From contig NIVC01004673.1 of assembly GCA_002269645.1 (NCBI GenBank), positions 1-38,475 of the forward strand: DNA of 38,475 bases, read 5' to 3'. A model generated the notes under the pieces. It was not told the DNA's origin, searched no databases, and saw only the letters and a program-made list of their open reading frames with translations. Shown piece after piece: positions 926 to 30,322 of this stretch; positions within the stretch are counted from its first letter, which is position 1, and each line of letters begins with the position of its first letter. The stretch comes from Macrostomum lignano. Taxonomy: Eukaryota. Both the position numbers and the translations under genes were made by a program.

Positions 926-957
926 AATAAAAATTTCCCAAACATTTATCATCCCAG

Positions 958-1885: not shown

Positions 1886-1925
1886 GATACAGTAACTACA
1901 CACGCAAATCCGCGTGCTCTCCCAG

Positions 1926-2170
1926 GTAAAACGCTACATGGAGTTTCGTAAGGTAGGTCGCGAGCTCGAACGCCGCGTAATCCGCTGGTTCGACTACCTG
2001 TGGACCAACAAGCAATCGCTGGACGAAAAAGAATTCTGGGCACCTTGCCAGACAAACTCAAGGCTGAGATCGCCATCCACGTGCACTTTGACACGCTGAA
2101 GAGGGTGGCGATCTTCCAGGATTGTGAGCCAGGCCTGCTGGTTGAGCTGGTGCTCAAACTCAAGCTGCAG
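1926..2170 (+). CDS. CNGA: CNG alpha subunit exon (C-linker)
   Basis: cccag|GTA acceptor. [29 protein letters not shown], then (1-nt shift near 2031) [45 protein letters not shown]. Donor cag|gtgagg. Confidence 0.95.
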
Positions 2171-2739: not shown

Positions 2740-3015
2740 TCTATTAATACCTATACATACAAGTACATACCTTCTATACTACATATTGTATGTACGCTCA
2801 AGTATCTGAAGGCTGCGCACGGCTGTTCAGTCCAAGGACTGGGGGGTCGCCACACACAGCCTCAATTACCCCAGCTAATGCTGGCACCCATTTTACAGCT
2901 GGGTGAACTGAAGCAATGCAGAGTTAATGTCTTGCTCAAGGAAATAAATTGTTCCAGTGGGACCGGGAATCGAACCCTCGACCTTTCAAGTCGTGAGTCC
3001 GACGGTAGCTAAATT
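2740..3015 (-). mobile_element. tRNA-derived SINE with CORE-like domain in CNG intron
   Basis: Minus strand has B box GGTTCGATTCC (2966-2976) followed by CCTTGAGCAAGACATTAACTCTGCATTGCTTCAGTTCACCCAGCTGTAAAATGGG (2941 down to 2887). This resembles the MIR/CORE consensus CCTTGGGCAAG..CTTAAC..CTCAGT..C..CTGTAAAATGGG. Boundaries approximate. Confidence 0.7.
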
Positions 3016-3247
3016 TTGCTATATAAAATACAACAGAGCATTAAAAGTAAAACAATGGAAATGTTCACTGCCCAGATCAAATACAATCATGTTGATCATT
3101 TGAAGAAAGAAAAGAATTTTTTCCTATATGTGTATTATTTACAGGAAATTGCTGGCCTCAAATAAATAAAAATCTTTTTGTGGCCTGCGCAGTGTGATTT
3201 ACATGTAATGCACTCATTCAACCAGCTCGACGACTCAATTACGGCAG

Positions 3248-3837
3248 GTGTACTCACCCGGAGACTACATCTGCCGTAAGGGCGACATCGGCAAGGAGAT
3301 GTACATAGTGAAACGCGGCAAGCTCAGCGTGGTCTCACCAGACGGCAAAACCGTTTTCGTCACCCTGGGCGAGGGCAGCGTGTTCGGCGAGGTGTCCATC
3401 CTGAACATCCCGGCAACAAGACGGGCAATCGGCGCACCGCAAACGTGCGCAGCGACGGCTACTCGGACCTGTTCTGCCTGAGCAAGAACGACCTGTGGGA
3501 GGCGCTGACCGAGTACCCCGACGCCAAGGTCAAACTGCTGGAGAAAGGACAGCAGGTTCTGCGCAAAGACAACCTCATCGACGAGGAGGCGCTGGCCAAG
3601 GCGCTGCAAGATCGCGAGTCGACCGAGCGTCGAGTCGAGCGGCTGAACGCCGAGCTCGGCGTGCTGCAGACTCGGTTCGCCAGGATGCTGGCCGAGTTCG
3701 GCTCGACGCAGAGCAAACTGAGGCGGCGCCTGGTCGCACTGGAGGCTTCCTCGGCTGGCGGCCTGCGGGCCGATGCGGCAGGAGACGAGGCCAGCGATGA
3801 GGCTACGGATGCTGGGGCTGCTGGACCAGCTGACTGA
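3248..3837 (+). CDS. CNGA: CNG alpha subunit terminal exon (cyclic-nucleotide-binding domain + C-terminal leucine zipper)
   Basis: ggcag|GTG acceptor. [36 protein letters not shown](G)[24 protein letters not shown], with a 1-nt shift near 3411. CLZ-like [25 protein letters not shown]. Stop TGA at 3835-3837. Confidence 0.95.
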
Positions 3838-7096: not shown

Positions 7097-7746
7097 CAGG
7101 CAGACTTCTGATCATCTTCTTGGAGGCGACATTCAGCAGATACCATTTAAAAGACACGCAGCCCAGAGTCCGCTGCAGCTCCAGCCGGGAGGTCAAGTCG
7201 CCAGGGTCCACACCAACAGCCCTGGGCTCCTGATAGAAGAACACCTCGCGAAACGGGCCCAGCCACACGTTGGCCAACCGAACAGAATTGAACAGCCAGC
7301 TGTCCCGGCCAGAGAACTCGCCGTACGGTCGGCGGCTCCTGAACACGTGGCCAACCGAGAGCAGGGACAGGCGTACACGGTGCGCCGCACTGCCAATAGC
7401 GAAACGACATCTCCAGATTCTCGCCGCCCCAGGTCTCCATGAGGTTGTCGTAGGCGCCGAACGCGTGGAAGGTGCTGGCCCGGACGGCGAGAAGACCACC
7501 GGACATCACGGGCGAGTGGAACGGCTCGTCCAAGGGCACGCTGGCCGGCAGGGGGTCCCAGGCGAACCGCAGGTTCCACGTGAAACCGCCGACAACGTGG
7601 GGCGTAGCCGAATATTCGAACGTCTTCTCGTCGATAACGTCTACTAGGGGAAGAGCGACCGATTTTGGCCGGATGCTGAGGTGATGAAGCAGAGGCTGCA
7701 GCCAGCCGACATTCACTTCGATGTGACTGTCTAGGAAGATGAGCAC
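7097..7746 (-). CDS. GALNT11: Polypeptide GalNAc-transferase (GALNT11/pgant35A-like), exon 3, catalytic domain. Model: 11960(or 11828)-11358, 8251-8136, 7746-7097
   Basis: ccgcag|GTG acceptor. VLIFLDSHIEVNVGWLQPLL (DxH motif), GGFTWNLRFAWD, PVMSGGL, METWGGENLEMSFRYWQCG, then after two 1-nt shifts near 7370-7390 GHVFRSRRPYG..NSVRLANVWL..LGCVSFKWYL. These blocks match human GALNT11 closely from memory. Candidate donor CCTG|gtaggt at 7096. Confidence 0.9.
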
Positions 7747-7767
7747 CTGCGGTTTGAGATTGAAGCT

Positions 7768-8050
7768 GTGGGGATTAGGGGTATGGGATTGATCGAGTGT
7801 GGGGATCGATCATGTGGGAATTTGGGGTATGGGGATTCAGGCTGTGGGAATTAGGGTATAGGGATTGAGGGTGTGGGAATTAGGGTATGGGGACTAAGGG
7901 TGTGGGAATTAGGGTATGGGATTGATGTGGTAATTAGGGCATGGGGATTAGAAGTATGGGGATGGAGGGTGTGGGAATTAAGGTATGGAGATTGATGATA
8001 TGGGAACTGAGGGTGGGGGAATTAGGGGTATGGGGATTGAGGATGTGGGG
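7768..8050. repeat. G-rich degenerate ~28-bp repeat (GGGAATTAGGGTATGGGATTGAGGGTGT) in GALNT intron
   Basis: Repeated GGG runs and TTAGGG words within intron 7747-8135. Confidence 0.85.
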
Positions 8051-8135
8051 ACCTATATTCCACAAGCTAAATAGATATTCAATCAAAATGCACCAAATTC
8101 AAACTGATTGTAAACCCTGACAGCCAGCCACTCAC

Positions 8136-8251
8136 CCGCCCTGTGGCCAGTTTGGCCGCATAATTTCTCGCCCTGATGAGGCCCAGCTTCATTGGCGCAA
8201 TTTCGTAGCGAATTTTCGACGATATAAAATTCACATCAAAGCTGCTGATGC
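8136..8251 (-). CDS. GALNT11: GALNT11-like exon 2 (absent from the ORF track)
   Basis: ttccag|GC acceptor, 116 nt, reads (G)ISSFDVNFISSKIRYEIAPMKLGLIRARNYAAKLATGR. Donor CGG|gtgag. Phases fit both neighbouring exons; GLIRAR...ATG is the GALNT motif. Confidence 0.9.
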
Positions 8252-8374: not shown

Positions 8375-11305
8375 TTTCCTTCAGATCAAAGACAAGAGCC
8401 TTCCAGTTATCCAAAATCCTCAGGTCAAGGGCAAGAGCCTTCCAGTTATTCAAAATCCTTCAGATCAAAGGCAAGAGCCTTCCAGTTATCCAAAATCCTT
8501 CAGATCAAAGGCAAGAGCCTTCCAGTTATCCAAAATCCTTCAGATCAAAGGCAAGAGCCTTCCAGTTATCCAAAATCCTTAGGTCAAGGGCAAGAGCCTT
8601 CCAGTTATTCAAAATCCTTCAGATCAAAGGCAAGAGCCTTCCAGTTATTCAAAATCCTTCAGATCAAAGGCAAGAGCCTTCCAGTTATCCAAAATCCTTC
8701 AGATCAAAGGCAAGAGCCTTCCAGTTGTTCAAAATCCTTCAGATCAAAGGCAAGAGCCTTCCAGTTATCCAAAATCCTTCAGATCAAAAGACAAGAGCCT
8801 TCCAGTTGTTCAAAATCCTTCAGATCAAAGACTAGAGCCTTCCAGTTATCAAAATCCTTCAGATCAAAGACAAGAGCCTTCCAGTTGTTTCAAAATCCTT
8901 CAGATCAAAGACAAGAGCCTTCCAGTTATCCAAAATCCTTCAGATCAAAGGCAAGAGCCTTCCAGTTATCAAAATCCTTCAGATCAAAGGCAAGAGCCTT
9001 CCAGTTGTTCAAAATCCTTCAGATCAAAGACAAGAGCCTTCCAGTTATCCAAAATCCTTCAGATCAAAGGCAAGAGCCTTCCAGTTGTTCAAAATCCTTC
9101 AGATCAAAGACAAGAGCCTTCCAGTTGTTCAAAATCCTTCAGATCAAAGACAAGAGCCTTCCAGTTATCCAAAATCCTTCAGATCAAAGGCAAGAGCCTT
9201 CCAGTTGTTCAAAATCCTTCAGATCAAAGGCAAGAGCCTTCCAGTTATCCAAAATCCTTCAGATCAAAGACAAGAGCCTTCCAGTTGTTCAAAATCCTTC
9301 AGATCAAAGACAAGAGCCTTCCAGTTATCCAAAATCCTTCAGATCAAAGACTAGAACCTTTCAGTTATCCAAAATCGTTCAGATCAAAGATAAGAGCCTT
9401 CCAGTTGTTCAAAATCCTTCAGATCAAAGACAAGAGCCTTCCAGTTATCCAAAATCCTTCAGATCAAAGACAAGAGCCTTCCAGTTGTTCAAAATCCTTC
9501 AGATCAAAGACAAGAGCCTTCCAGTTATCCAAAATCCTTCAGATCAAAGGCAAGAGCCTTCCAGTTATCCAAAATCCTTCAGATCAAAGACAAGAGCCTT
9601 CCAGTTGTTCAAAATCCTTCAGATCAAAGACAAGAGCCTTCCAGTTATCCAAAATCCTTCAGATCAAAGCAAGAGCCTTCCAGTTATCCAAAATCCTTCA
9701 GATCAAAGACAAGAGCCTTCCAGTTGTTCAAAATCCTTCAGATCAAAGACAAGAGCCTTCCAGTTATCCAAAATCCTTCAGATCAAAGGCAAGAGCCTTC
9801 CAGTTGTTCAAAATCCTTCAGATCAAAGGCAAGAGCCTTCCAGTTATCCAAAATCCTTCAGATCAAAGACAAGAGCCTTCCAGTTGTTCAAAATCCTTCA
9901 GATCAAAGACTAGAGCCTTCCAGTTATCCAAAATCCTTCAGATCAAAGACAAGAGCCTTCAGTTGTTCAAAATCCTTCAGATCAAAGACAAGAGCCTTCC
10001 AGTTATCCAAAATCCTTCAGATCAAAGGCAAGAGCCTTCCAGTTATCCAAAATCCTTCAGATCAAAGACAAGAGCCTTCCAGTTGTTCAAAATCCTTCAG
10101 ATCAAAGACAAGAGCCTTCCAGTTATCCAAAATCCTTCAGATCAAAGGCAAGAGCCTTCCAGTTATCCAAAATCCTTCAGATCAAAGACAAGAGCCTTCC
10201 AGTTGTTCAAAATCCTTCAGATCAAAGACAAGAGCCTTCCAGTTATCCAAAATCCTTCAGATCAAAGGCAAGAGCCTTCCAGTTGTTCAAAATCCTTCAG
10301 ATCAAAGCAAGAGCCTTCCAGTTATCCAAAATCCTTCAGATCAAAGACAAGAGCCTTCCAGTTGTTCAAAATCCTTCAGATCAAAGACAAGAGCCTTCCA
10401 GTTATCCAAAATCCTTCAGATCAAAGACTAGAACCTTTCAGTTATCCAAAATCGTTCAGATCAAAGATAAGAGCCTTCCAGTTATCCAAAATCGTTCAGA
10501 TCAAAGACAAGAGCCTTCCAGTTATCCAAAATCCTTCAGATCAAAGACAAGAGCCTTCCAGTTGTTCAAAATCCTTCAGATCAAAGACAAGAGCCTTCCA
10601 GTTATCCAAAATCCTTCAGATCAAAGGCAAGAGCCTTCCAGTTATCCAAATCCTTCAGATCAAAGACAAGAGCCTTCCAGTTGTTCAAAATCCTTCAGAT
10701 CAAAGACAAGAGCCTTCCAGTTGTTCAAAATCCTTCAGATCAAAGACAAGAGCCTTCCAGTTATCCAAAATCCTTCAGATCAAAGACTAGAACCTTCCAG
10801 TTATCCAAAATCCTTCAGATCAAAGACAAGAGCCTTCCAGTTGTTCAAAATCCTTCAGATCAAAGACAAGAGCCTTCCAGTTATCCAAAATCCTTCAGAT
10901 CAAAGACTAGAGCCTTTCAGTTATCCAAAATCGTTCAGATCAAAGATAAGAGCCTTCCAGTTATCCAAAATCGTTCAGATCAAAGACAAGAGCCTTCCAG
11001 TTATCCAAAATCCTTCAGATCAAAGACAAGAGCCTTCCAGTTATCCAAAATCCTTCAGATCAAAGGCAAGAGCCTTCCAGTTATCCAAAATCGTTCAGAT
11101 CAAAGGCAAGAGCCTTCCAGTTGTTCAAAATCGTTCAGATCAAAGACAAGAGCCTTCCAGTTATCCAAAATCCTTCAGATCAAAGACTAGAGCCTTTCAG
11201 TTATCCAAAATCGTTCAGATCAAAGATAAGAGCCTTCCAGTTATCCAAAATCGTTCAGATCAAAGACTAGAGCCTTCCAGTTATCCAAAATCCTTCAGAT
11301 CAAAT
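8375..11305. repeat. 40-bp minisatellite (AGAGCCTTCCAGTTATCCAAAATCCTTCAGATCAAAGACA)n, ~73 copies, in GALNT intron 1
   Basis: Read directly; explains the six repetitive ORFs at 8309-11329. Confidence 0.97.
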
Positions 11306-11357: not shown

Positions 11358-11960
11358 CATTATTGCTTTCATCGTCCAGAACGATCACTTCGTGCAGCAG
11401 ATGAGGCGGCGACCGATTGAAAATGCTGTACAGTGTGCGGCGAAGGGTCGACTTGGCCTCGTTATAGAAGCAGATAATAACTGATGCGGTTAAGTTATCG
11501 TAGGACTGAGAATTGGCGTAGTAAGACTTGGACTGGCAGGCGGGTCCCTGGTGTCCGGCACTAATCTCTGCAAGCTGAGCCTATCGCTTAGAAACGCATT
11601 AAACGAATGCTGATGAAATGCTTTGTTATATTCCGCTCGCTCTTCCGGTGTTTTAGGAAAGATTTTTAAGCTGGGATTTAACAATGGATTATTGCTGCTA
11701 CCCGGGTTAGACTTCCAGTACAGTTTCAAGTTGATTGACAGGTTCCAGTAGCACAGCAGGCAGATTAATGTGAGCAAAACTAGCAAAACTAATTTGAGCA
11801 CAACGCCTAATCTCAATCTGACGCGCATTAAACAGCATGGCGCAATGGTCACTGATGAAGAGCAGACGCTGCGCCAGTAGCGCCAGAATAGGCCGCCTCG
11901 GTTTTTGGGACTCGCCGAACTTTGCTGGCGATGTTGATGCGACTGCTGCGACCGGAGCAT
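11358..11960 (-). CDS. GALNT11: GALNT11-like exon 1 (type II membrane anchor, stem, start of catalytic domain)
   Basis: Hydrophobic [22 protein letters not shown] after a basic tail (alternative start ATG at 11828), then [23 protein letters not shown]. After a 1-nt shift near 11540: [52 protein letters not shown] is typical of GALNT11. Donor AATG|gttagt at 11357. Confidence 0.9.
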
Positions 11961-12440
11961 TCGGGCTGAAGTTGGCAGGCCGGTAGGGAGACTCCAGTTA
12001 TGCTGGGGATTCAGTCTTAGTAGGAAGGGGCAGAATTGCTGTCAGCGCTGGCCGAAGCCAGGGTGCCCACAACTAACTGTAGCTAACCATACGCTCGGAA
12101 CTACTATAATTGCCTTTAAAAAGTCGAATTTTAACTTCCGGAATAAAAACCTGCTACATCAAACTAATGAAAACTTTTTTTTATGGAATCAGCAAAAAAG
12201 GCTAATTAAAGGAAGCTATAAATTACTTTATAACCTCATTAGTTCATTTTAGTAAATTCATTATTAACGTAATTTTATCAAATACAAAGACGAAAAATTG
12301 TAATATATCTTTCCAAATAGATTGATATAAGAAATACTTCATATTACTTAGTGCCTTGTACGACTGAAACCTAGAAAATTAAGTAGAAATTCAATATAAA
12401 AAATCGTCGTCGTAGTACTCAAAACAATGGAACTTAAAAT

Positions 12441-12664
12441 TGTGCGTACATTGGGGCAGGAACTGTTTACCGGGCAGGCTGGGTCTGGGGTGTGCGTACA
12501 TTGGGGCAGGAATTGTTTACCGGGCAAGCTGGGTCTGGGGTGTGCGTACATTGGGCAGGAATTGTTTACCGGGCAGGCTGGGTCTGGGGTGTGCGTACAT
12601 TGGGGCAGGAATTGGTTAGCGGGCAAGCTGGGTCTGGGGTGTGCGTACATTGGGGCAGGAATTG
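12441..12664. repeat. 50-bp minisatellite, ~4.5 copies
   Basis: GTGTGCGTACATTGGGGCAGGAATTGTTTACCGGGCAGGCTGGGTCTGGG repeated. Confidence 0.95.
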
Positions 12665-13319
12665 ATCAATAAATTAGTAAGAACTCGCTAAAATATTAAA
12701 CTACTACGGGATTATCTCCCCATTCTACATAAACAACAGCCCATATTTACTCGTGTAGCACAGCGTGTATATTATTGTTGCACGGAATTAAACAAAAATG
12801 AACTGCAAGAATTATTTCAAAGGAATGTACAAACTAGCTCAACATTATTAATCGTAGTTATTAGCAAAATATGAGTAATATATTCAGCGAAAAAAGATGA
12901 AAAAATGGAAGACGACGTTGCAAAAGTCCAATTAAAAAGGTGGAAACATTCTCTGGAGTTCAGAAAGATTCATTAAGAAAGTAAGTGCAACAAGAAAATA
13001 AGTTTAAAGATTACTTGATAGAAACAAATTTGTAGTAAAATAGCAACATTGTAGAGGTTGGTCCAGTGGGCCTTAACCAAAGGTGTACACGCTTATACTT
13101 TGAACGCTTTTAGACTGACGATTGAACAGCAGATATGATGAGGAATACAGTGGCATTCGTTGGCCTTCAATTTTTTAGTTTTTGAAAATTAGAATAAAAC
13201 TTCGAATTTATTCTGATCGAAAATACAAGTTTTAATACTATTTCTGAAACTATTGCCACGTACACGAATAAAAAAATCAGCGAAGTTGGCCGAATTTAAT
13301 CTGCTATGATGAGAATGCA

Positions 13320-13873
13320 AGGATCTGGGAGGCTGGCAGCCCAGCAACGGAGGATCTGGGAGACTGGCAGCCCAGCAACTGAGGATCTGGGAGGCTGGCC
13401 CAGCAACTGAGGATCTGGGAGGCTGGCAGCCTAGCAACTGAGGATCTGGGAGGCTAGCCCAGTAACTGAGGATCTGGGAGGCTGTGGCCCAGCAACTGAG
13501 GATCGGGAGGCTGGCAGCCCAGCAACTGAGGATCTGGGAGGCTGGCAGCCAGCAACTGAGGATCTGGGAGGCTGGCAGCCCAGCAACTGAGGATCTGGGA
13601 GGCTGGCAGCCCAGCAACTGAGGATCTGGGAGGCTGGCAGCCCAGCAACTGAGGATCTGGGAGGCTGGCCCAGCAACTGAGGATCTGGGAGGCTGGCCCA
13701 GTAACTGAGGATCTGGGAGGCTGTGGCCCAGCAACTGAGGATCGGGGAGGCTGGCAGCCCAGCAACTGAGGATCTGGGAGGCTGGCAGCCCAGCAACTGA
13801 GGATCTGGGAGGCTGGCATCCAGCAACTGAGGATCTGGGAGGCTGACAGCCCAGCAACTGATGATCTGGGGTC
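13320..13873. repeat. 31/28-bp minisatellite (CTGAGGATCTGGGAGGCTGG[CAG]CCCAGCAA)n
   Basis: About 18 copies; same family as 17751-18215. Confidence 0.95.
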
Positions 13874-13993
13874 CCCCTCAAAATATCAGTGAGCCAATTT
13901 TCTATTTAATTTATCGGCACTTTTTGTTATCACTTTTGCTCATCTTCAGGGTGAATCCCAACCTACTCTTCAATGCCGAATAAAAAGACAAGC

Positions 13994-14679
13994 TCAGTCA
14001 AAATCAAGCAAAGAGCCGGAAGCGCTCATATAGACTGTATCGATAATGACGCTGGTCAGCGGGTCCAGTTCCGACCGAGGCAGAGCCTCTACCTCGCTCA
14101 GCATCACAACCGGAGCGTGCTGACTGACCAACTCCTGTCGATTCTGTGCCGGAAAAGATGAAAAAGAATTCGAGGCAGATTTTGAAGAGTCCAACTGAGA
14201 CTGCGGAGCATTGTCCGGCTCCAAGTCAATGAGGACGGCGGCTGCCCGGGTTGGAAGCTTTTGCTTCGGTGAAGACTCCGAATGGATGGCAACTGGCGGC
14301 GACAGGAAAGCGCTAAAGCGTGAGCGCACGCGGACTGACCCGGTTGAGAAGCCAATTCAAGCATGCCAGCTAGATAAGACTCGAACTCGTGACGTTTAGT
14401 ATCGGGTCCAGACAGTCTGCTAGGCAGTCTTGGCTGCGGAACAGAAGGATTCAATGACAGCGAATGCCGGCGAGTCTGCCTGTGCAGCGACTCGAACTCG
14501 GCGAACAGTTTCTCCAGATTGTAGGCCGGCTGGCCGGGCCGAGCGACCCGGAGTTGATACAGAGTTGGCGCCGATTTCAGACGCGACACGGCCGGGTGAT
14601 TCGGTGGCGCCTTACGGTAGCCTGGCACTGTGACTCGAGTGCCAGGCAAGCCGCTGGGGTCCAGCTGATGATTATGATG
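13994..14679 (-). CDS. PX-domain-like protein with two clathrin-box motifs (one frameshift near 14355; no in-frame ATG before the domain)
   Basis: Acceptor ccctcag| at 14680-82 opens HHNHQLDPSGLPGTRVTVPGY..LYQLRVARPGQPAYNLEKLFAEFESLHRQ..PQPRLPSRL..KRHEFESYLAGML. This follows the PX pattern (..EF..LH..L; P.LP; RR..LE.YL). Restoring one A gives EIGFSTGSVRVRSRFSAFL and joins ORF 13994-14329, ending ..LIDLE..SLLDFD-stop. Domain call is by motif recall only. Confidence 0.55.
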
Positions 14680-14744
14680 CTGAGGGTGACCAATTTATTC
14701 ATGTTTGACAGATGTAGGACCTATTAATACCTATTAAAAAGGAT

Positions 14745-15707
14745 TAATGATCAAGCACCGCTAATCCCAGGTACCTTTAAATGATGGAGCACCGCTATTC
14801 CCAGGTACCTTTAAATGATGGAGCACCGCTAATCCCAGGTACCTTAAATGATGGAGCACCACTAATCCCAGGTACCTTAAAATGATTGAGCACCGCTAAT
14901 CCCAGGTACCTTAATGATCAAGCACTGCTAATCCCAGGTACCTTAATGATAAAAGCACTGCTAATCCCAGGTACCTTAATGATCAAGCACTGCTAATCCC
15001 AGGTACCTTAATGATCAAGCACTGCTAATCCCAGGTACCTTAATGATAAAAGCACTGCTAATCCCAGGTACCTTAATGATCAAGCACTGCTAATCCCAGG
15101 TACCTTAATGATAAAAGCACTGCTAATCCCAGGTACCTTAATGATAAAAGCACTGCTAATCCCAGGTACCTTAATGATCGAGCACTGCTAATCCCAGGTA
15201 CCTTAATGATCAAGCACTGCTAATCCCAGGTACCTTAATGATAAAAGCACTGCTAATCCCAGGTACCTTAATGATAAAAGCACTGCTAATCCCAGATACC
15301 TTAATGCTGGAGCACCGCTAATCCCAGGTACCTTTAAATGATGGAGCACCGCTATTCCCAGGTACCTTAATGATCAAGCATCGCTAATCCCAGGTACCTT
15401 AATGATGGATCACCGCTAATCTCAGACACATTTATGATGGAGCACCGCTAATCCCAGGGAACTTATGATTGAGCACCGCTAATCCCAGGGAACTTATGAT
15501 TGAGCACCGCTAATCCCAGGCACCTTAATGATTGAGCACCGCCAATCCCAGGCACCTTAATGATTGCGCACCGCCAATCCCAGGCACCTTAATGATTGCG
15601 CACCGCCAATCCCAGGCACCTTAATGATTGCGCACCGCCAATCCCAGGCACCTTAATGATTGAGCACCGCCAATCCCAGGCACCTTAATGATTGAGCACC
15701 GCTAATC
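14745..15707. repeat. 32/33-bp minisatellite (AAGCACTGCTAATCCCAGGTACCTTAATGATC)n, ~29 copies
   Basis: Read directly; variant blocks at both ends. Confidence 0.95.
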
Positions 15708-16234
15708 CTCATGTATTTTTACAAAGTATCGCAAATACACTAATCGTGAAAAAAGTTGTAAAGAAATTTAAAATCTGTCAATTATATTGATAATATTAAT
15801 AAGCTACTATGAATAAAAAGGAATTTACATAGTTAATTTTTATTAAATAGTATAGTGGGTACAAAACAAAGTGCGTTGAAATTTTTAAGTAACAAAGAAT
15901 TTAGAAGTTTATGCTCGTATTTTTAAAACTGGCTGTTAAGAATGAACGACAGTTGAAAATGATCTTTGAGAGAAATAAAGGTTATAAAATTATACTTATC
16001 CGTAACTCAGTAAACAAACCAAAGGCGATATATCAGGACTCGGAACACATTTCTTACAAAAAGATAGAATGTGATGGCACAGCTCAAAACCCGAAAACAG
16101 TGGCAAGGACGAAGAACTGTCCTTGACAACTCCGGTTGTCAATCGAAAATACAAATAAAATTATAGCTCAGAGCTATTCTGAAGAGATTCTAACGATTGA
16201 TAAGTCGACAGGGTGCGGTAAAATGTTTGATGAG

Positions 16235-17143
16235 TCAGTAATCGGTGAGCTTGCTCTTAGGCTGAGGCAGACGCTTAGTTTCCATCATCATCTCGTAGTC
16301 GTAGAAAGACAAGTCGTCAAACACAAAGTACTCAGTGTTCTTGTAGTCAAGAGACTTGTCCACTGAATCAATGCTGGCCGAAAATTTGCCCAAATAGATA
16401 CGACTTGAGTCCGATAAGGCGCCTGAAGTAGCGGATAGACTGCCGCTTGCTGACGTATTTGAACCCGATGCACTTCCGGTACGTCCGGTTGTTGGTGGTT
16501 TTGAAGCTGGTGGACTTCCGGTAGTTGGTGGTTGCGAAGCTGGTGGACTTCCGGTAGTTGGTAGTTTCGAAGCTGGTGGACTTCCGGTTAATGGCTTCGA
16601 ATTAGACTGACTTTCTGGGGAAGACGGCTTGGAACCGGAAGGACTTCCGGAATCTGGCTGCTTTGAACCAATCGAAGAACTTTCTGTCAATCCTTTTGTT
16701 GCTTTCGCGGCCACACCAGCGGCAGCAGCGGCAAAAATGCCACCACCATCAAAACCCCCTTTAAGTCCAGTTTTAGTGGACGATCCCGACACGGACTTTT
16801 GCGTTGGGCCGGAATCCGAACCAGCCTCCTCCGATTCGCTATCCGAATCTGACGAAGAAGAGTCGCTATCGGAGTCGCTATCGCTATCAGACGAAGACGA
16901 ATGCGTTGGAGTCGAAGATTTCGAAGAGAAGAACCTGACACTCGGACTGACTTGAACCGATCGGGTTGACGACAAAGCTACTGGTTGAGCATAGCGACAC
17001 GAGTGACGCAAAATTAAAGAGGAAGTTTTCGTTAACGTCGGAAGAAGAGACACCCAACCGAGTCTCTGGGTCAGGTCCTGCCAAACGAGCACTTGAAACA
17101 ATTGAAGAGATCATTGAGACGCAGTCGCCCTGTGTCTGGCTGG
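16235..17143 (-). CDS. NDUFV3: NDUFV3-like mitochondrial complex I accessory subunit, long low-complexity form
   Basis: Presequence-like Arg/Ser/Leu-rich N-terminus ending VRFFSSK, an SDSDSD tract, a P/S/T linker, and C-terminal DYKNTEYFVFDDLSFYDYEMMMETKRLPQPKS. The C-terminus fits the NDUFV3 motif (YKN.EYF.Y...SFYD.E.EM.K.RLPQPS in invertebrates, YKNLQHHDY..F.D...LSKFRMPQPS in mammals). The start needs a frameshift fix near 17075. Strong acceptor tttgtttcag| at 17144-46. Confidence 0.7.
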
Positions 17144-17750
17144 CTGAAACAAACAAATAAAATAATTAAAAGGTTTTACCGCAAGGCAGTTTTATAAACA
17201 AGTGCGGTATAGGTTTGAACGAAAACCTAGCATTTAAAAACACTCTTCAAAAACTTACAATGTCAAAAATGATTCCGGAATCAGCAACTTGTTTGAAATG
17301 CCAAATCCTTATTCAATTTTTAAGGAATAGTTGCTTTATTTCAAAAATAGCCATCACAGTAATTAAAGTACAAGAGTTGGGCGCATGCCAGGTTAGTAAG
17401 TGCAGCTTTGACAATCTAAATTGAAATGCAATTAAGTTACATCAGCGAAATGTTCAATTTTCTACCCCAAAACCAGATGGTCGACAAATTTCAGATTTGA
17501 GAAAAGTTGACCACTGGTTTCCGGGTTGAAACTTTAACATGTAGCTGAGAGCATATCCACATGATTTGCTATCTCAACCAACTGCACAATATATGCAACA
17601 AGAATCAAAAGTTTCAGTTTTTGTCAAGCGAACTTTTTTTTGGTATAGTTGATTATGAAACATAACAAAACACATACAGCTGGTAGCAACAAATATTTGC
17701 GAAAAAGAAAGCCTAGTAACTATGTAGTTTGACTCTGAACCTAAAGGCAT

Positions 17751-18215
17751 GGCTGAGCAACTGAGGATCTGGGAGGCTGGCCCAGCAACTGAGGATCTGG
17801 GAGGCTGGCCCAGCAACTGAGGATCTGGGGGGCTGGCCCAGCAACTGAGGATCTGGGAGGCTGGCCCAGCAACTGAGGATCTGGGGGGCTGGCCCAGCAA
17901 CTGAGGATCTGGGAAGCTGGCTCAGCAACTGAGGATCTGGGAAGCTGGCTCAGCAACTGAGGATCTGGGATGCTGGCTCAGCAACTGAGGATCTGGGAAG
18001 CTGGCTCAGCAACTGAGGATCTGGGAAGCTGGCTCAGCAACTGAGGATCTGGGAAGCTGGCTCAGCAACTGAGGATCTGGGAAGCTGGCTCAGTAACTGA
18101 GGATCTGAGAGACTGGCCCAGCAACTGAGGATCTGAGATGCTGGTGGCCCAGCAACTGAAACTGAGGGTCTGGGCGGCTGGCCCAGCAGCTGAGAATTTG
18201 GGAGGCTGGGAAGGT
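17751..18215. repeat. 28-bp minisatellite (CTGAGGATCTGGGAGGCTGGCCCAGCAA)n
   Basis: About 15 copies; same family and orientation as 13320-13873. Confidence 0.95.
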
Positions 18216-18244
18216 GTTAAACATGAACATAAAAACCAATTAAG

Positions 18245-18847
18245 CTACATTCTCAGCAGCCGCAGAGGCCGGGTCCAACGCTCAGTGAAGGCGAACCCAG
18301 CGGCAGACTCAGGCTCGGGGACTCCGCCAGCATCGCAGCTGCCGTCAACAATGAAGCCGAAGAAGTCGACGATGCAGAGGCACGGCCGCTGGGCCACCAG
18401 CTGATGACACAGCGGGTCCTGGATAGCGTTACAGTTGCGCAGGTCCAGGAAGCGCAGATCTGGCATGCGCTCCGGAACGAGCGGCAGCTGCTTGCCGGTG
18501 AGCTGATGAAGACCAACTAGACTCAACGAGCTCATCAGGCGACACGTGTCAAATAGCAGATCAACAGTCTTGTCGGTGATTTTCCAACACCAGTTGAGCA
18601 CTAGGATCTCTAGCCTATGACCGAAATTGGACACCAGATGATGCAGGCCTTCATCTGTGAGGCAGCGACACTCGGTGAGGTCAAGGTGAGTCAGGCTGGG
18701 GAAATGTCCAAACTGGCCAAGGCGATTGAATGCCTCATCGGAGATTCGATAGGCTTTGCGCAAAGTCAGGGACTCCAGGCAGCCAAGCTGGCTGATGCCA
18801 GAGTCCAGCAGTTCGTCGGAGACATCTTCGGCGAAGTCGCAGCAAAG
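18245..18847 (-). CDS. F-box/LRR protein exon 3 (cysteine-containing LRRs). Model: 20387-19987, 19406-19055, 18847-18245 = 451 aa, no frameshift
   Basis: atcag|CTT acceptor, phase 0. LESLTLRKAYRISDEAF, LTHLDLTECRCLTDEGL, LEILVLNWCWKITD, LRFLDLRNCNAIQD. Confidence 0.9.
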   Translation of the reverse strand, partial: LCCDFAEDVSDELLDSGISQLGCLESLTLRKAYRISDEAFNRLGQFGHFPSLTHLDLTECRCLTDEGLHHLVSNFGHRLEILVLNWCWKITDKTVDLLFDTCRLMSSLSLVGLHQLTGKQLPLVPERMPDLRFLDLRNCNAIQDPLCHQLVAQRPCLCIVDFFGFIVDGSCDAGGVPEPESAAGFAFTERWTRPLRLLRM

Positions 18848-19054
18848 CTGATTTGGGGATGATCGGGGATATAAAAATTTACATTGATATTTTGAGAATT
18901 TATTTACTAGACAATAATTCAAATATTCAGAAATACTGACTAGACTAGGCTTTTCTGATAAATATGGCCCATCAGTAAAAACCGCCTCCTTCTACTAGAG
19001 TAGTCCCTGGCACTATCATGGACAGCGACAAAGACAGGTATATAGCGCGCGCAC

Positions 19055-19406
19055 CATTCGCAAGCGCGAGCAGCTAGCCAGAGCCGGAGCCAGATGCCTC
19101 GACTCGCAACCGCTAGCATCAAGCACCACCCTCTCGAAGGTGTCTGTGCGGGACGTCAACAACAGGTTAAGCGCCTCGGGTGGCGTCGTGTTCTCATCTA
19201 AATTGATATAGCTCAGCTGAGTAAGCAGGCGACCAAGATGACCAGTAGTGGAATCGCAGGCTCGCCTGCAGTGGGCCAGACAGAGCGATTGAAGCCGAGG
19301 AAAAGATCTGGCTAGCGTTTCAACCAGCTCCGGTGTAAGCTGGTCGCTGCCGCTCAGATCCAGATGAAGCAGGTAACCACCAACTGGCTGACTGGATTGC
19401 ATGTGC
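19055..19406 (-). CDS. F-box/LRR protein exon 2
   Basis: cacag|G acceptor (phase 2). LLHLDLSGSDQLTPE, LQSLCLAHCR, LSYINLD. Donor ATG|gtgcgc joins RLRM to LCCDFAED in frame. Confidence 0.8.
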
Positions 19407-19986
19407 CTGTGTCTGACAGAACAGAGCGTGAGGGAATGTGCTCAGAGTGGATCACAGATACTAGAATAACTAGATGGGTGACGCAGCACATTTCCGCGTA
19501 AGCTACTTTCAGTTTAGTAGTAAGTTAAAAAGAAACATTTTCATGTATTTTTAAAGCCAAGGCTCATTAATTGGCTCTTACCCCCCAGGTTAAACCCTCC
19601 AACCGCGCCTTTCCACACGAATACGTTAGAGCCCACGCCCACCCCAATTTTAGTGCCTTTCTTGGAATTCCAGCCCAAAGCTGCTATGTATATTTCAGTA
19701 GACTGGCTAATGTACATTATTGCTGAACCAATTAGCAAGTTGTTTATGCCTGCAAGCTTGGGCTTCTAAACTTATCAAAGAAATTTCAGCTGCCTTTATT
19801 TTTATAAAATAGCTTATGTATTCTTTTTTGCTACTAAACTGAAATTAGAAAGCTGTTTTACTTTCTAGTTAAAGGAGGATAGACAATGCCAGAAAGAAAG
19901 ATAATTTATTATAATAAATTATTATATAAATGAAACAAGATGGGTAGAAGTATCATGTACAAACAGTAAATTAACAAGAGCTTTAC

Positions 19987-20387
19987 TCAATGCATAATCC
20001 TGCAAGAGCTTCTTTACTAGGTCTTAAATAGGCCAGCTGCAGATAGATTAGCCGTGGGCATCGGTGCAACACTTCACCAAAAATATCTGCAACATCATCT
20101 GATAATTCAGCTTTATCACAGGCCTGCCGACTCAAAATCAAAGTGCTAGCCAATGGTGCAAATCCAAGTAGCTGTCTCAAGTAGGATAATGATAAATGAC
20201 ACTGAGAATTAGTGAAATCAAGCTTTTGCCAAAACCTACTATTATGAGCAAGATGATAAAAATATTTATTAAGAGGTGCAACTTTATTTAATAGTTCTGG
20301 CAGGTCCAGGTATGCAAGTATCTGCAGCTGTATCATATATGGAAGATCAGTCAGAGTGACCAAGCCTTTACCAGACAAGCTTGTCAT
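19987..20387 (-). CDS. F-box/LRR protein exon 1 (F-box)
   Basis: LTDLPYMIQLQILAYLDLPELLNKVAPLNKYFYHLAHNSRFWQKLDF is an F-box pattern (LP..I..IF.YL....L...V......W). Donor GA|gtaaag at 19986. Confidence 0.9.
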
Positions 20388-22489
20388 ATTGCTTTATAGT
20401 GACCAATATCCCAACAATGCAATAGCTTTGCATTGAATGAAAATAAATAAAATCTGAAAAGAAATGGCAAATTCAGTTAACTATAGATAAAACACTGTTT
20501 AGGTTCAAATTTTGTGTACAGATATACAATAGCCAAATAAAGCTTCTATTAAAAGCAAATTTCAATAGCCCAAGGAGGTTCATAAAGGCTTTACATTAGT
20601 AGAATGTATTATTTAGTTCTCATTAAATGTTTTATCCACCTGGGTTATTCCATGATAGGGTCATCAAAGGTATAGAAATTTTTTTAAAAAATTATTTGCA
20701 AATGTGAATATTTCATTTTGCATATAATTATGTATAGTTTCATTTTTATGTAGTTTCATACACATTTATCTACCTCTAAGGTATATATATTTTGTTTTGA
20801 TCATAGTACCCTTGCAAGATTTTAAATGTCCCGCGGGACATTATAAAAAGTTTAATCTAGTTTTCAATAAGTAGAAAAGTTAATAAACATAATGCATCAA
20901 GTGCATAGATAATAAAAATCTTTCTTTCTTATATCTAAAGACTGAAATTATAAAGTTTTATGATCTAATATAGTTCTATCTATCATAATTTTTTATTTCA
21001 AAAAGTTTGACTTCCCTTTTTTAAGTGTTAAAAATGACCATCATTTTTTTACAAACAGTTGTTGTACTAATTTTCAAGAGGTTTATAAGGTGATAATTTT
21101 TTGCTAAAATATTTTCTGAGCCTATATTTAAGTTTATAGTCATTTTTGTTAGTTTATGATAAGTGTAACATGCTAAAAAAACCTGCAAAGTTACCTAACG
21201 ACCATCATTTTCTGGTATTCTGAAATTTGTTGATCTTTATAAAACCTGAATTGCTATCATTTATTCCTAAATTTTATACAAAAAACTGAATTTACTGATA
21301 TTCTAAAGTCATGTCTTTTTTTAATGTGAATTACTTATTCAATTTCTCTTTCAAAGTTTTTACAGTTTTGATTGTAAAGAAAAATATAGTGGAATTCAAG
21401 TCTTTTATTAAAAATGTATACTGTCAATTACTTGCACTATTAAAAAGGTTGTTCCAATTACTAACCATGCACCTAGAACTCTCCACTTTAGTTTGCAATG
21501 CACCTTAACACATGCCCCAATCTTCAGCATAAGTAGTCTAACTAGACTCAAGTTTTTACTATCCATTGGTGCTACTGCTTATTGCCTAACAAATAATCTG
21601 TATTTGCCTTTGGTTTTGTTAATTGTTATATTCTATTCTTTGAATTCTTGAATAGATTAGGACTGTCCATCTTTATGATCATATGTTGAGTTGTGCAATC
21701 ATGAAGTGATGTTTTTGTTGAAGGTGCATAAGTACGTTTGATCTGAAATGTGAAACAGGTATAATAAATTTTATGGTTAGACAAGCAAGTTATAGTTTTT
21801 ATATGAACAACTATGGATTATAAACAATCTTTTAACCAAGATTGTATCTAAAATAGAGAATCCTAATACACTTTTTTAAAACTGAAGGTCGTTTTTTTGA
21901 AACAAACGACCGTCAGTCAACGACCGTCATTTAAGAAAAAATGTGCAACACAGTTAAAGTTATCTACTAAAATGTAATAATTGTTTGTAACCATTCATCT
22001 AGCTATTGTTTACTACAATTAATGATCAATTGAGACAAAAACTTGCCTGATTCACAGGAATCTTAAACTTAAGTTATAAAGTTGGATACATAAACTTTCA
22101 CCAAAAATGACCGTCATTGAAAGTTTCTCTCTGCTAAATCAACACAGTAAGACAAATGACTTTAAAATGTATCTCATCTCAATCTAGAGGTCACGCCCAT
22201 AAATATAGAACTCACAAAGTCTCAATTTAGTTTGTCTTTTGTATGATTACTGATTATTATTTGCTCCAACCCAACGACCGTCATCTCGTGAATTACCCAC
22301 CTTATAGATAGGTCCTCAATATTTATATATTTGTAGTAATTGTACAAATAAAAATTGCAAAGGATATGTTATAACTTATATTTAAAACATATTTTTTGCA
22401 TTATCTAATACATTCTCGCTAAACAAAACTTGCAGTTTAAACTATAAATTACAAAAATTATTAATCCATAATTTTTCGCTTAAATAAAA

Positions 22490-25838: not shown

Positions 25839-27204
25839 ATAAAGCACTAAAATTAAAAGCAACATTAAAGCATTATAATCAAGATGTCATAAATAAATGT
25901 GGCATAAGTGTGGGAGAGATCTGTATAATGTAGCATTTGTATGCAATCCTAAGAACTAGCTAGTAAAAGTGTAGATTAGTAGCAGGTCCTATTACTGCTT
26001 CAATCATAAACCTTAAAATTGCCACTATCTGCACTATCACATTAGTTAGTAAAGAGAGTCAAAGTTAAAATCTTCTAATTTAGACATATTTAAGCGTGGA
26101 CTAATTCAGTCAATGCTAGGATTATATTACCTAGGCCATTTGCTACATTGAGTCCTATTATTTAGACATTAAAATATCTGACTAATAGAGATAGTGTTAT
26201 TGATTTGTATGGGACCCAAAAAGGGTCATTGTGGATCTTACAATATTTACACTAGTGGCAGCATTGGTGGGTTCCTGGACACTTCGTCATCTTACCACTT
26301 TGTCATCCACTCATATTTCTAGACACTTCGTCATCTTACCACTTCGTCATCTACGATACTATTGTGGACACATCGTCATCTACTCCCTGGACACTTCGTC
26401 ATCATCCACTTTGTCTAAAAAACTTATTGAATAGCTATATGTAACTTTGTCAGCTAAGTTGCATCGAGTAGTCATAAATATAGGTGGCTACACTGAGGAT
26501 TAAATAACTGATTAACTAACTGATAATTAATGACGATTAACTACGAGTCTACGACATGTGAGGGTTTCCCGACAGATATTCAGACAGATATTCAAAACGA
26601 TCATCTACTACTTTTAACAAAATGGACCAAACGGAACCATATTTTTGGCAGATGTTTACGCATGTGTTTTGCAATCAAATGAGCCCAAATTTGTTTTATA
26701 AAATAAAAAACTTTACGAAGTGCATTGTTTCAAAGATTGCTTGGCAACACCCTGATTCAGCATCTCTTCAACGTTTTCTGAAAATGATTCAATTTTTACA
26801 TCCCATAAATGTGCCCCGTATCCCAAAAAGACAATGGACTAACTCTTACGCATGTTTCAGCTGTAAAATGCCGCATCACGCGTCTAATAAAATACTTTAC
26901 TTCTTGAATTATTTTCTTTTAAAGTGTGCTTGGCGATTTGCTTTTTTGAAGGCAAGTCAAGAAACAGCGCATATTTGCTGATGTCAGAACTCCATTTCGC
27001 TCTCAAATTAAATGAATTTATAGTTCCATTCTTACGCACATCCCAGCTTTAGAATGACACCATTGAAGCTGAAAAAGAAACAGTATTTCCTGAGATATTC
27101 GACTCTAAAGTGTGCTTTGCTTTTGAGTCAATAACGCTTGACGTTGTATGTCGAAATATACGCCAAGAAATTGTGACACCATTTTTTTGCTTACGAAACA
27201 TAAA

Positions 27205-28047
27205 ACTTAACTCGCTCTTTTACGCACGTCCCAGCTTTAAAATGACACCTCAGGCGTCGCCAAAGACGCCTCCGTTCGTGAGATATTCGACTCGAAACAT
27301 TGCTCGGCGTGTACAGACATTCACCTTATAAATCAAATGTATTCCCAATCTTTGTGCACGTGCTCCACCTGTGTTTTTCAGTCAATTCCGATGAAATTTA
27401 ACTCGCTCTTTTACGCATGTCCCAGCTTTAAAATGACACCTCAGGCGTCGCCAAAGACGCCTCCGTTCGTGAGATATTCGACTCGAAACATTGCTCGGCG
27501 TGTACAGACATTCACCTTATAAATCAAATGTATTCCCAATCTTTGTGCACGTGCTCCACCTGTGTTTTTCAGTCAATTCCGATGAAATTTAACTCGCTCT
27601 TTACGCATGTCCCAGCTTTAAAATGACACCTCAGGCGTCGCCAAAGACGCCTCCGTTCGTGAGATATTCGACTCGAAACATTGCTCGGCGTGTACAGACA
27701 TTCACCTTATAAATCAAATGTATTCCCAATCTTTGTGCACGTGCTCCACCTGTGTTTTTCAGTCAATTCCGATGAAATTTAACTCGCTCTTTTACGCATG
27801 TCCCAGCTTTAAAATGACACCTCAGGCGTCGCCAAAGACGCCTCCGTTCGTGAGATATTCGACTCGAAACATTGCTCGGCGTGTACAGACATTCACCTTA
27901 TAAATCAAATGTATTCCCAATCTTTGTGCACGTGCTCCACCTGTGTTTTTCAGTCAATTCCGATGAAATTTAACTCGCTCTTTTACGCATGTCCTAGCTT
28001 TAAAATGACACCTCAGGCGTCGCCAAAGACGCCACCGTTCGTGAGAT
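27205..28047 (+). repeat. 191-bp tandem array in left foldback arm (~4.4 copies)
   Basis: Identical ORF starts at 27337, 27718 and 27909 show the 190-191 bp period. Confidence 0.95.
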
Positions 28048-28189
28048 ACGAGCTATTTGAGTTGATTTTTGTTGAATTTGCACAGTATATTTAAGTTGGT
28101 TTGCACATTACGCGTTTATTGCTTCTATTTTAGGCACTGTTTATTTACTAACCTTTGGGTCTAAGGGTACTTATATTGGATCACAGCAA

Positions 28190-28982
28190 GGATAATCGTA
28201 CCGATGCTCACAAAAAATCACTTTTGGTCACTCGCAATCGACTGCGACGAACGGAAAATTTATTACATGGACTCGATGCAGCATTCAAACGCCAGGCGTA
28301 TGATAGCTGCAGAGTGTGTAGCACGGTTTAAGTAAGTCACAAAGTTAATTTCACCTTACCCTACTTAATAATTCAATTCACATGAAAACAGATTGCTAAA
28401 GTTTCTTTTACTACTTGTGTACCATAGCGCACTTCTGACTGGCACCGAACTTGAGAGTCCACTGCCACATCCTCATCTTGAACACCTTCGCTATAAGCAC
28501 TTTAACCTGGCTAATCGAATGTGCACTCAACAGAAGGACGCCTACTCATGCGGTGTTTTCACCTGCCTATTCGGTCGCAGTTTGCTTCTTGACAAATGTA
28601 CAATAATCGTTAACTGCACCCAACGTAAGCTTGAGACTGCAAGAAAAATAATAAAAACCGCACTGCTTAACTTCTCTGAGGCGGCTAGTCAACCAACATG
28701 CAAGTACTGTGGAAAAGAAGAACCACCTGGTCGGAGTTGCCGCATTGAATGGGTAATCGAAAAAGCGTTTCAATTGCATGCAAATAAAAAATAAGTCTAC
28801 TTTATTAATTTATAAAATGTATAAAGGGTAGATAGAGTATGGAATGTCATTATATACATATCACAATTGTTTTCATCCTATAGATTGAGTGTCCATCCTG
28901 CCTCTTCTGGCACCACAAAATCTGTTGGGACCGAAGTGCTGCTAGCGCCGTCTGTAAAACGTGCTCCCAAATTGACATTTAA
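28190..28982 (+). CDS. 3' end of a transposon gene: Ulp1/C48 cysteine protease + PHD finger. Exons ~28190-28331, 28392-28752, 28884-28982
   Basis: IIVPMLTKNHFWSLAIDCDERKIYYMDSM (His, Asp), AA|gtaagt..acag|A, QQKDAYSCGVFTC (Gln, Cys), CKYC..EW|gtaatc..atag|IECPSCLFWHHKIC..VCKTC-stop (C4HC3). Intron phases are consistent. Confidence 0.85.
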
Positions 28983-29182
28983 AACTTGTTTCCGCTGGCA
29001 ATCTGATAACTGCATCATTTATTAAAAGCCCTTTTAATTGCAGGTATGCCAAAATTTAAGCGGAAGTCAGTGAATAATGATGTGACACTGTCGCTCGTAT
29101 TATTAATATGTTTTAAACCCCAAAGAGGCCGGGCCGGCGCGGGGGTTTAAAACCAGTTAGAGTCAGATACCTGCCTCTAAAA

Positions 29183-30322
29183 TTGACTGAATTGACTGAA
29201 AAACACAGGTGGAGCACGTGCACAAAGATTGGGAATACATTTGATTTATAAGGTGAATGTCTGTACACGCCGAGCAATGTTTCGAGTCGAATATCTCACG
29301 AACGGAGGCGTCTTGGCGACGCCTGAGGTGTCATTTTAAAGCTGGGACATGCGTAAAGAGCGAGTTAAATTTCATCGGAATTGACTGAAAAACACAGGTG
29401 GAGCACGTGCACAAAGATTGGGAATACATTTGATTTATAAGGTGAATGTCTGTACACGCCGAGCAATGTTTCGAGTCGAATATCTCACGAACGGAGGCGT
29501 CTTTGGCGACGCCTGAGGTGTCATTTTAAAGCTGGGACATGCGTAAAAGAGCGAGTTAAATTTCATCGGAATTGACTGAAAAACACAGGTGGAGCACGTG
29601 CACAAAGATTGGGAATACATTTGATTTATAAGGTGAATGTCTGTACACGCCGAGCAATGTTTCGAGTCGAATATCTCACGAACGGAGGCGTCTTTGGCGA
29701 CGCCTGAGATGTCATTTTAAAGCTGGGACATGCGTAAAAGAGCGAGTTAAATTTCATCGGAATTGACTGAAAAACACAGGTGGAGCACGTGCACAAAGAT
29801 TGGGAATACATTTGATTTATAAGGTGAATGTCTGTACACGCCGAGCAATGTTTCGAGTCGAATATCTCACGAACGGAGGCGTCTTTGGCGACGCCTGAGG
29901 TGTCATTTTAAAGCTGGGACATGCGTAAAGAGCGAGTTAAATTTCATCGGAATTGACTGAAAAACACAGGTGGAGCACGTGCACAAAGATTGGGAATACA
30001 TTTGATTTATAAGGTGAATGTCTGTACACGCCGAGCAATGTTTCGAGTCGAATATCTCACGAACGGAGGCGTCTTTGGCGACGCCTGAGGTGTCATTTTA
30101 AAGCTGGGACATGCGTAAAAGAGCGAGTTAAATTTCATCGGAATTGACTGAAAAACACAGGTGGAGCACGTGCACAAAGATTGGGAATACATTTGATTTA
30201 TTAAGGTGAATGTCTGTACACGCCGAGCAATGTTTCGAGTCGAATATCTCACGAACGGAGGCGTCTTTGGCGACGCCTGAGGTGTCATTTTAAAGCTGGG
30301 ACGTGCGTAAAAGAGCGAGTTA
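29183..30322 (-). repeat. 191-bp tandem array in right foldback arm (~6 copies)
   Basis: Reverse complement of the left array; units recur at 29369, 29560, 29751, 29941 and 30132. Confidence 0.95.

Follow-up and report, generated by a model that had tools for sequence, protein, structure and literature searches.

A candidate trans-spliced polycistronic gene cluster in the flatworm Macrostomum lignano, including a PX-like gene that may take its start codon from the spliced leader

Four genes lying one behind another on the minus strand of scaffold NIVC01004673.1 of Macrostomum lignano (assembly GCA_002269645.1, Mlig_3_7) raise the question of whether they form an operon, transcribed as a single precursor and resolved into separate mRNAs by spliced leader (SL) trans-splicing. 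The complete scaffold of 38,475 nt, hereafter referred to as the window, was analyzed. In the direction of transcription, the genes encode an F-box/LRR protein (FBXL), an NDUFV3-like protein, a PX-like protein, and a polypeptide GalNAc-transferase (GALNT), as determined from open reading frames (ORFs), existing annotation, and Pfam matches. The original prediction, made by reading the DNA letters, had placed these genes in one orientation, each behind an acceptor-like CAG (20456-20454, 17146-17144, 14682-14680, and 11968-11966), and the strand, the positions, and all four CAGs were recovered. It had also named flatworms, alongside nematodes and tunicates, as animals that resolve operons by SL trans-splicing, and M. 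lignano is a free-living flatworm in which SL trans-splicing is well documented (PMC8629364). The cluster contains no opposite-strand gene among the ORFs of the window and the annotated coding sequences (CDSs), as expected for an operon. Our analysis suggests, with a probability of roughly 0.6, that FBXL, NDUFV3, and PX constitute one polycistronic unit with FBXL likely the first cistron, while GALNT may be the fourth cistron of this unit, or it may be trans-spliced as well but transcribed on its own.

M. lignano possesses a single 35-nt SL (CGGTCTCTTACTGCGAAGACTCAATTTATTGCATG), whose 3' end (...TTGCATG) is a terminal AUG (PMC8629364). Approximately 30% of its genes are trans-spliced and approximately 15% lie within operons, and the trans-acceptor motif is [T/C]TNCAG (PMC8629364). 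The published operons comprise 2-9 genes each (PMC5730564, PMC8629364). Intergenic distances within operons are enlarged by repeats, as described genome-wide by Ustyantsev and Berezikov (2021; PMC8629364), and the repeat-inflated intercistronic spacers put forward in the original prediction are therefore already a published property of this genome. After subtraction of repeats, the intergenic distances follow a bimodal distribution with an operon mode at approximately 100 bp, and the published threshold for operons is a repeat-adjusted distance of less than 1 kb (PMC8629364). During annotation of Mlig_3_7, transcriptional units were cut at peaks of SL-read coverage, which mark gene 5' ends, before ORFs were called with TransDecoder, and transcripts with an overlap to annotated repeats were not submitted to GenBank (PMC5730564). 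No SL RNA gene was identified in the window, where Rfam and tRNA scans gave no match. The window also holds no copy of the 35-nt SL with up to three mismatches allowed, and the fetched sister loci contain no exact match to the 3' 16-mer of the SL.

The window is one of four near-identical M. lignano copies of the gene cluster. A search with the PX-like protein retrieved a 228-aa protein (P0005, “BOX15_Mlig026123g5, partial”) and its cluster mate P0006 (“BOX15_Mlig026460g3, partial”), and sister loci of PX are located on a 550-kb scaffold (L003), on a contig whose end is reached by the locus (L004), and on a 256-kb scaffold (L005). Local BLAST alignments at approximately 90-98% identity show L003 to be collinear with the window, and the order FBXL-NDUFV3-PX-GALNT is kept in both L003 and L005. 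L004 has the same gene order, but FBXL is cut by the contig end and exon 1 of GALNT is degraded. The window, L003, and L005 were aligned together to compare spacers and deletions. The protein clusters of PX and GALNT consist solely of GenBank and UniProt entries, with no M. lignano transcript among them.

Trans-splicing of the PX-like gene (13994..14679, minus strand) at the CAG of ccctCAG (14680..14682, minus strand) appears well supported, judging from the CDS starts in four copies. In the window, L003, L004, and L005 alike, the deposited PX CDS is 5'-partial and its first base directly follows CCCTCAG, which in the window is position 14679. Five codons upstream of this site, the frame is closed by a TAA. 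For a 5'-partial ORF to have precisely these limits, the 5' end of the transcript must lie within 0-2 nt of the CAG. In the window, a 1-nt deletion at ~14313 causes the annotated CDS to stop early at 14104, giving 191 aa compared to 228 aa in the sister copies. Trans-splicing at the flagged acceptors, as originally predicted, is thus indirectly supported for PX, with CDS starts 0 nt after the CAG in four copies, and less strongly for GALNT, with a start 2 nt after the CAG in one copy.

According to the annotation and the sister copies, PX has no genomic start codon. The first in-frame methionine is residue 114, past the PX-like region (residues 39-112 in the alignment with SNX22), and a donor of the form ATG|GT does not occur within the spacer between NDUFV3 and PX. 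Since a genomic start codon is lacking, the 3'-terminal AUG of the SL would be the initiator, and joining of ...TTGCATG to CATCAT... gives the in-frame sequence M-HHNHQLDP.... A flatworm SL with a terminal AUG is able to provide the initiator, according to Cheng et al. (2006, J Biol Chem 281:733) as cited in PMC12582326. An M. lignano paralog, P0008, begins with M-LDP from a genomic ATG five residues off the equivalent position in PX, and this start places the natural N-terminus at the PX acceptor. The balance leans slightly toward PX translation depending entirely on trans-splicing, with the start codon missing from the genome coming from the SL AUG in all four copies, while in the older paralog P0008 an ATG is encoded in the genome close to the corresponding position. 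If so, PX would represent a dated case in which a gene lost its own initiator after becoming trans-spliced inside an operon.

The protein itself would best be called a divergent PX-like paralog. The Pfam PX profile (PF00787) did not match it even at E = 10, and three structures of PX domains gave marginal matches, of which SNX22 ranked first (E = 0.0076). P0008, for which a PF00787 match is precomputed, shares 38% identity with it (E = 4e-15) and retains the RYSDF motif, which is KLFAEF in the PX-like protein of the window. A single-sequence AlphaFold2 model of the PX-like protein was unusable (pLDDT 37). P0008 (201 aa) is encoded with its genomic ATG at L006 10001-11249 and L007 10001-11249, in a neighborhood unrelated to the cluster and approximately 2.5 kb upstream of a same-strand RNase_T gene.

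The second line of evidence concerns the spacers, whose length was measured from stop codon to acceptor, with the third measured after correction of the PX frame; adjusted lengths were obtained by subtracting repeats detected by Tandem Repeats Finder (TRF). On the minus strand, the FBXL-NDUFV3 spacer (spacer 1, 17147..18244) is 1101 nt long and contains a 28-nt minisatellite (17745-18209), the NDUFV3-PX spacer (spacer 2, 14683..16234) is 1555 nt long and contains a 32-nt minisatellite of 965 nt (14744-15708), and the PX-GALNT spacer (spacer 3, 11969..13993) is 2028 nt long and contains minisatellites of 31-nt (13320-13870) and 50-nt (12441-12664) units. These lengths agree with the gaps of 1.1, 1.6, and 2.0 kb given in the original prediction, whose description of the gaps as largely minisatellite holds for the middle one (62% by TRF) and fails for the first (41%) and the third (38%). 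Among the three aligned copies, the minisatellite totals vary from 314 to 507 nt in spacer 1, from 965 to 998 nt in spacer 2, and from 775 to 1324 nt in spacer 3, whereas the adjusted lengths (646-647, 590-614, and 1230-1253 nt, respectively) show that the unique parts are constant. Spacers 1 and 2 are below the 1-kb operon threshold, and spacer 3 is above it. Spacer 3 would fall under 1 kb only if the PX 3'-untranslated region (UTR) or masked interspersed repeats take off more than 250 nt; no interspersed repeats emerged when the unique segments of the spacers were compared by BLAST with the remainder of the window. One minisatellite family with 28-31-nt units (CAGTTGCTGGGC...CCCAGATCCT on the gene strand) lies just downstream of both the FBXL and the PX stop codons (17745-18209 and 13320-13870).

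Candidate poly(A) signals are present in all three spacers. In spacer 1, an AATAAA (17340-17335) is located 196 nt ahead of the NDUFV3 acceptor in 3/3 aligned copies. Spacer 2 contains AATAAA at 15844-15839, approximately 180 nt (repeat-adjusted) ahead of the PX acceptor, and again at 14699-14694, while in spacer 3 an ATTAAA (13910-13905) lies just ahead of the minisatellite downstream of PX. The spacer minisatellites lack canonical poly(A) signals on the transcribed strand.

The locus tags provide a further indication. In M. lignano tags, the prefix appears to denote a cluster of transcriptional units and gN the number of the gene inside the unit, a rule inferred from one published example, and transcriptional units that cluster at 95% identity receive a common prefix (PMC5730564). 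The PX copies are tagged Mlig026460g3 and Mlig026123g5, while PX genes total only four. As the PX copies are nearly identical (1 substitution in 688 columns) and yet carry different prefixes, the clustered units should be longer than PX and include several genes, which implies that PX probably lies in a multi-gene transcriptional unit. The numbering is compatible with FBXL = g1, NDUFV3 = g2, and PX = g3 in L005, and also with 3 + 2 genes distributed over L003 and the truncated L004. No mention of Mlig028237, the prefix of the annotated GALNT fragment, or of Mlig026123 was found in the literature text and supplements searched.

By the published criterion, NDUFV3-PX would be an operon pair because PX appears to be trans-spliced and the repeat-adjusted distance is below 1 kb, and the same would hold for FBXL-NDUFV3 provided that NDUFV3 is trans-spliced. 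PX-GALNT is not clearly such a pair, as the adjusted distance is more than 1 kb and the prefix is another one. One promoter for all four genes, as the original prediction proposed, is unproven, and a unit of three cistrons is better supported. In such a unit, transcription by RNA polymerase II would begin upstream of FBXL and yield FBXL, NDUFV3, and PX in one polycistronic precursor. The upstream mRNAs would be released by cleavage and polyadenylation, for which the AATAAA sequences at 17340 and 15844 are candidate signals, and the downstream mRNAs would be capped through SL addition, with the 3'-terminal AUG of the 35-nt SL acting as the PX initiator. The spacers would then be short intercistronic regions that minisatellites with a varying number of copies have enlarged.

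The two upstream genes also have acceptor-like sites close to their start codons. FBXL (18245..20387, minus strand; annotated CDS 20387..18245, 453 aa) contains F-box-like and LRR_6 domains (Pfam), and its tentative exons (20387-19987, 19412-19055, and 18847-18245, minus strand) represent the best-consensus solution among ten GT-AG solutions giving 453 aa. FBXL is intact in the window copy. A protein search with exon 1 as the query gave no homologs. The acceptor-like CAG (tttcttttCAG, 20454..20456, minus strand) is located 67 nt upstream of the FBXL ATG, fits [T/C]TNCAG, and is identical in L003 and L005; an SL AUG joined at this site would open a 20-codon upstream ORF (uORF). Upstream of FBXL, there is no annotated CDS within approximately 4 kb in the 3/3 copies that cover this region. 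An AT-rich insertion of approximately 1.7 kb (20642-22326) with AGGTGG direct repeats at its flanks lies approximately 190 nt upstream of the FBXL acceptor and is absent from L003 and L005.

The NDUFV3-like gene is a single exon (16235..17114, minus strand), and at its C-terminus the ORF at 16238-17110 matches the NDUFV3 domain of Pfam (E = 1.6e-10). Its acceptor-like CAG (tttgtttCAG, 17144..17146, minus strand), located 30 nt upstream of the ATG, perfectly matches [T/C]TNCAG, and a donor-like GTAAG (17258-17254) lies upstream of it. An SL AUG joined there would open an 11-codon uORF, the TGA of which overlaps the ATG of the gene (ATGA). In the window, a 2-nt (CT) deletion at ~17075 throws the NDUFV3 ATG out of frame, and restoring both bases brings the ATG at 17114 into frame; L003 and L005 have intact ORFs of 324 and 349 aa, respectively. 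Rescue of the window frame by an SL AUG was considered and rejected, as L003, L004, and L005 have the two extra bases and their own ATG in frame. The gene contains a Pro/Thr/Ser-rich coding tandem repeat with a 33-nt unit (16484-16588, TRF), whose copy number differs among the genomic copies, the window copy being shorter than those of L003 and L005. No NDUFV3 CDS was deposited for any copy, likely because repeat-overlapping transcripts were excluded and the gene holds this coding tandem repeat. A look-up for proteins identical to the 75-aa out-of-frame NDUFV3 ORF gave no match.

Polypeptide GalNAc-transferase identity is confirmed for GALNT, which has a GT2 catalytic domain and the Gal/GalNAc-T motif (Glycos_transf_2 and Glyco_transf_7C in Pfam) and matches solved GalNAc-transferases at ~1e-31. 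Exon 1 (11358..11960, minus strand) ends at the donor G|GTTAGT at 11357 and in the window lacks one C of a C run at ~11545. The following intron contains a minisatellite with a 40-nt unit in 73 copies (2.9 kb, 8377-11304), compared to approximately 0.55 kb in L003 (13876-14422). This repeat-filled intron splits the GALNT annotation from exon 1, so that just a 218-aa fragment (7147..8192, minus strand; BOX15_Mlig028237g1) was deposited in the window and is the sole part of GALNT annotated in the scaffold; the exon at 7150-7809 (minus strand) is 100% identical to PAA46857.1 (“BOX15_Mlig028237g1”). The candidate acceptor (aacttCAG, 11966..11968, minus strand) is located 5 nt upstream of the ATG. 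In L003, the GALNT CDS (466 aa, “RM...”) starts 2 nt after AACTTCAG, i.e., the equivalent of the flagged CAG, while in L005 it starts at the ATG. GALNT therefore appears to be trans-spliced at 11968-11966, with evidence from one copy that is weaker than that for PX. A UniProt protein (P0007, A0A1I8FCG8, 551 aa) fuses PX to GALNT via the GALNT acceptor, across the ~2-kb spacer. Its exons hop between frames in the manner of an ab initio prediction, and some of GALNT exon 1 is translated out of frame. P0007 is a chimeric mis-annotation and constitutes weak evidence for co-transcription, although chimeric gene models over operons of parasitic flatworms have been taken as footprints of polycistronic precursors (PMC12582326).

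Several observations weigh against a common precursor or against the evidence used for it. The adjusted length of spacer 3 (1230-1253 nt) exceeds the 1-kb threshold for a unit of four genes, and the GALNT fragment of the window bears a different prefix, Mlig028237, the only GALNT tag seen. The locus-tag argument hangs on a numbering rule derived from one published case. With CCTCAG, the acceptor of PX does not match [T/C]TNCAG, which the other three flagged sites fit. Moreover, this motif occurs at a density of 2.9 per kb on the minus strand of the window, and therefore its closeness to a start codon alone is weak evidence, weakly above chance; by our own estimate, the chance that at least 3/4 genes have the motif within 70 nt of the start is approximately 2%. 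The GALNT CDS of L004, with its degraded exon 1, starts at a site not preceded by an AG, and 5'-partial starts are thus not always trans-splice sites. The GTAAG located 112 nt upstream of the NDUFV3 acceptor would permit an ordinary 5'-UTR intron. Finally, approximately 60% of the trans-spliced genes of M. lignano lie outside operons (PMC8629364), and trans-splicing alone is therefore no proof of co-transcription. This last figure favors a rather unlikely explanation in which every gene is transcribed alone from a promoter in the unique part of the upstream spacer, SL trans-splicing merely trims outrons, and no operon exists. Such promoters could be accommodated by the 590-1250 nt of unique sequence left in the spacers, given that upstream regions of up to 2 kb sufficed for faithful reporter expression in M. 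lignano (PMC5730564), and the GALNT fragment does have a separate transcriptional-unit prefix. However, the PX tags g3 and g5 point to multi-gene units, adjusted spacers 1 and 2 fall inside the operon mode of the published bimodal distribution, and just 64 nt of unique sequence is available between the 965-nt minisatellite and the PX acceptor.

The same GTAAG at 17258 means that the acceptors, which the original prediction regarded as unpaired, are not established as such, and it speaks for reading them as cis 3' splice sites of 5'-UTR introns with upstream non-coding exons and no SL. Acceptors are often common to cis- and trans-splicing in flatworms (PMC12582326), and the [T/C]TNCAG motif is frequent (2.9 per kb). 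Nevertheless, this explanation is highly improbable: for PX, it would require a cis exon with ATG as its very last bases, and no ATG|GT occurs in spacer 2, the annotation cuts PX precisely at the acceptor in 4/4 copies, and spacer 3 contains no GT[AG]AG donor at all. A different doubt, which can coexist with any of these readings, concerns the window copy alone. In comparison to L003 and L005, the window has three frameshifting deletions (CT at ~17075 in NDUFV3, C at ~14313 in PX, and C at ~11545 in GALNT), and in the DV1 line a large chromosome is duplicated, and the assembly is highly redundant (PMC8629364, PMC5730564), so the window could be a decaying duplicate with real frameshifts in NDUFV3, PX, and GALNT and no working operon. 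Yet two of the three deletions are in C runs and the third is in CTCT, PacBio data were among the inputs to the Mlig_3_7 assembly (PMC8629364), FBXL is intact, and PX differs at just 1/688 columns of the three-copy alignment, which makes decay improbable. The three frameshifts on this small scaffold are probably consensus errors. Such a pattern of deletions on a small scaffold is typical of long-read consensus errors. A polycistronic unit of FBXL, NDUFV3, and PX remains the reading that we prefer.

Outside the cluster, a plus-strand gene for a cyclic-nucleotide-gated channel (Ion_trans and cNMP_binding, exons in 1-3834) converges on GALNT, and the cluster therefore ends at the GALNT side. Farther upstream of FBXL, the window contains an inverted repeat (26553-30974) whose arms (26553-28048 and 29189-30974) are 99-100% complementary, surround a unique center of approximately 1.1 kb, and each hold a 191-nt tandem array; this structure may represent a foldback-type element or else a palindrome made by the assembly. 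A retrotransposon integrase is represented by a fragment (rve and Integrase_H2C2, 32287-33354, minus strand) in a block of 60% GC, and beside it, 33418-35569 contains long ORFs without a Pfam match that have a transposon-like appearance. The annotation of the scaffold is incomplete, in that NDUFV3 is missing, GALNT is truncated by the 2.9-kb minisatellite intron, and three window-specific frameshifts resemble consensus errors.

The cluster can be compared to several known systems and would serve as a worked example of two published phenomena, minisatellite-inflated intercistronic spacers and an SL-donated start codon; it also illustrates that a flatworm operon may be recognizable to a reader from sequence alone, without tools. 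The SL2-type operons of Caenorhabditis elegans give rise to a polycistronic precursor in which 3'-end formation is coupled to SL addition, and their cistrons are functionally unrelated housekeeping-type genes. The proposed cluster would resemble them in having a precursor resolved by 3'-end formation and an SL, and in the unrelated, housekeeping-type nature of its genes, whereas C. elegans has intercistronic regions of approximately 100 nt and a dedicated SL2, and M. lignano has a single SL and, in this cluster, raw spacers of 1.1-2.0 kb. With respect to its start codon, PX resembles flatworm genes initiated at the SL AUG. The work on this AUG by Cheng and coworkers in 2006 was reportedly done in a parasitic flatworm, said to be Schistosoma. 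The likeness lies in an SL that ends in AUG and an ORF that is in frame from the acceptor without a start of its own; SL-AUG use by PX is deduced from sequence and annotation alone, and P0008, unlike PX, keeps a genomic ATG. The fusion of PX to GALNT through the GALNT acceptor in P0007 likewise recalls the chimeric models over operons of parasitic flatworms (PMC12582326). The closest match is to the operons already reported from M. lignano itself (Wudarski et al., 2017, PMC5730564; PMC8629364), which come from the same species and assembly and share unrelated conserved genes on one strand, [T/C]TNCAG-type acceptors, and tandem-repeat spacers that shrink to a few hundred nucleotides after repeat subtraction. 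There is no difference in kind, and the cluster departs from these operons in its PX acceptor (CCTCAG) and in a third spacer over the 1-kb cut-off. The cluster thus looks like an ordinary example of a system described genome-wide for M. lignano, and its most noteworthy detail is the apparent reliance of PX on the SL for its AUG.

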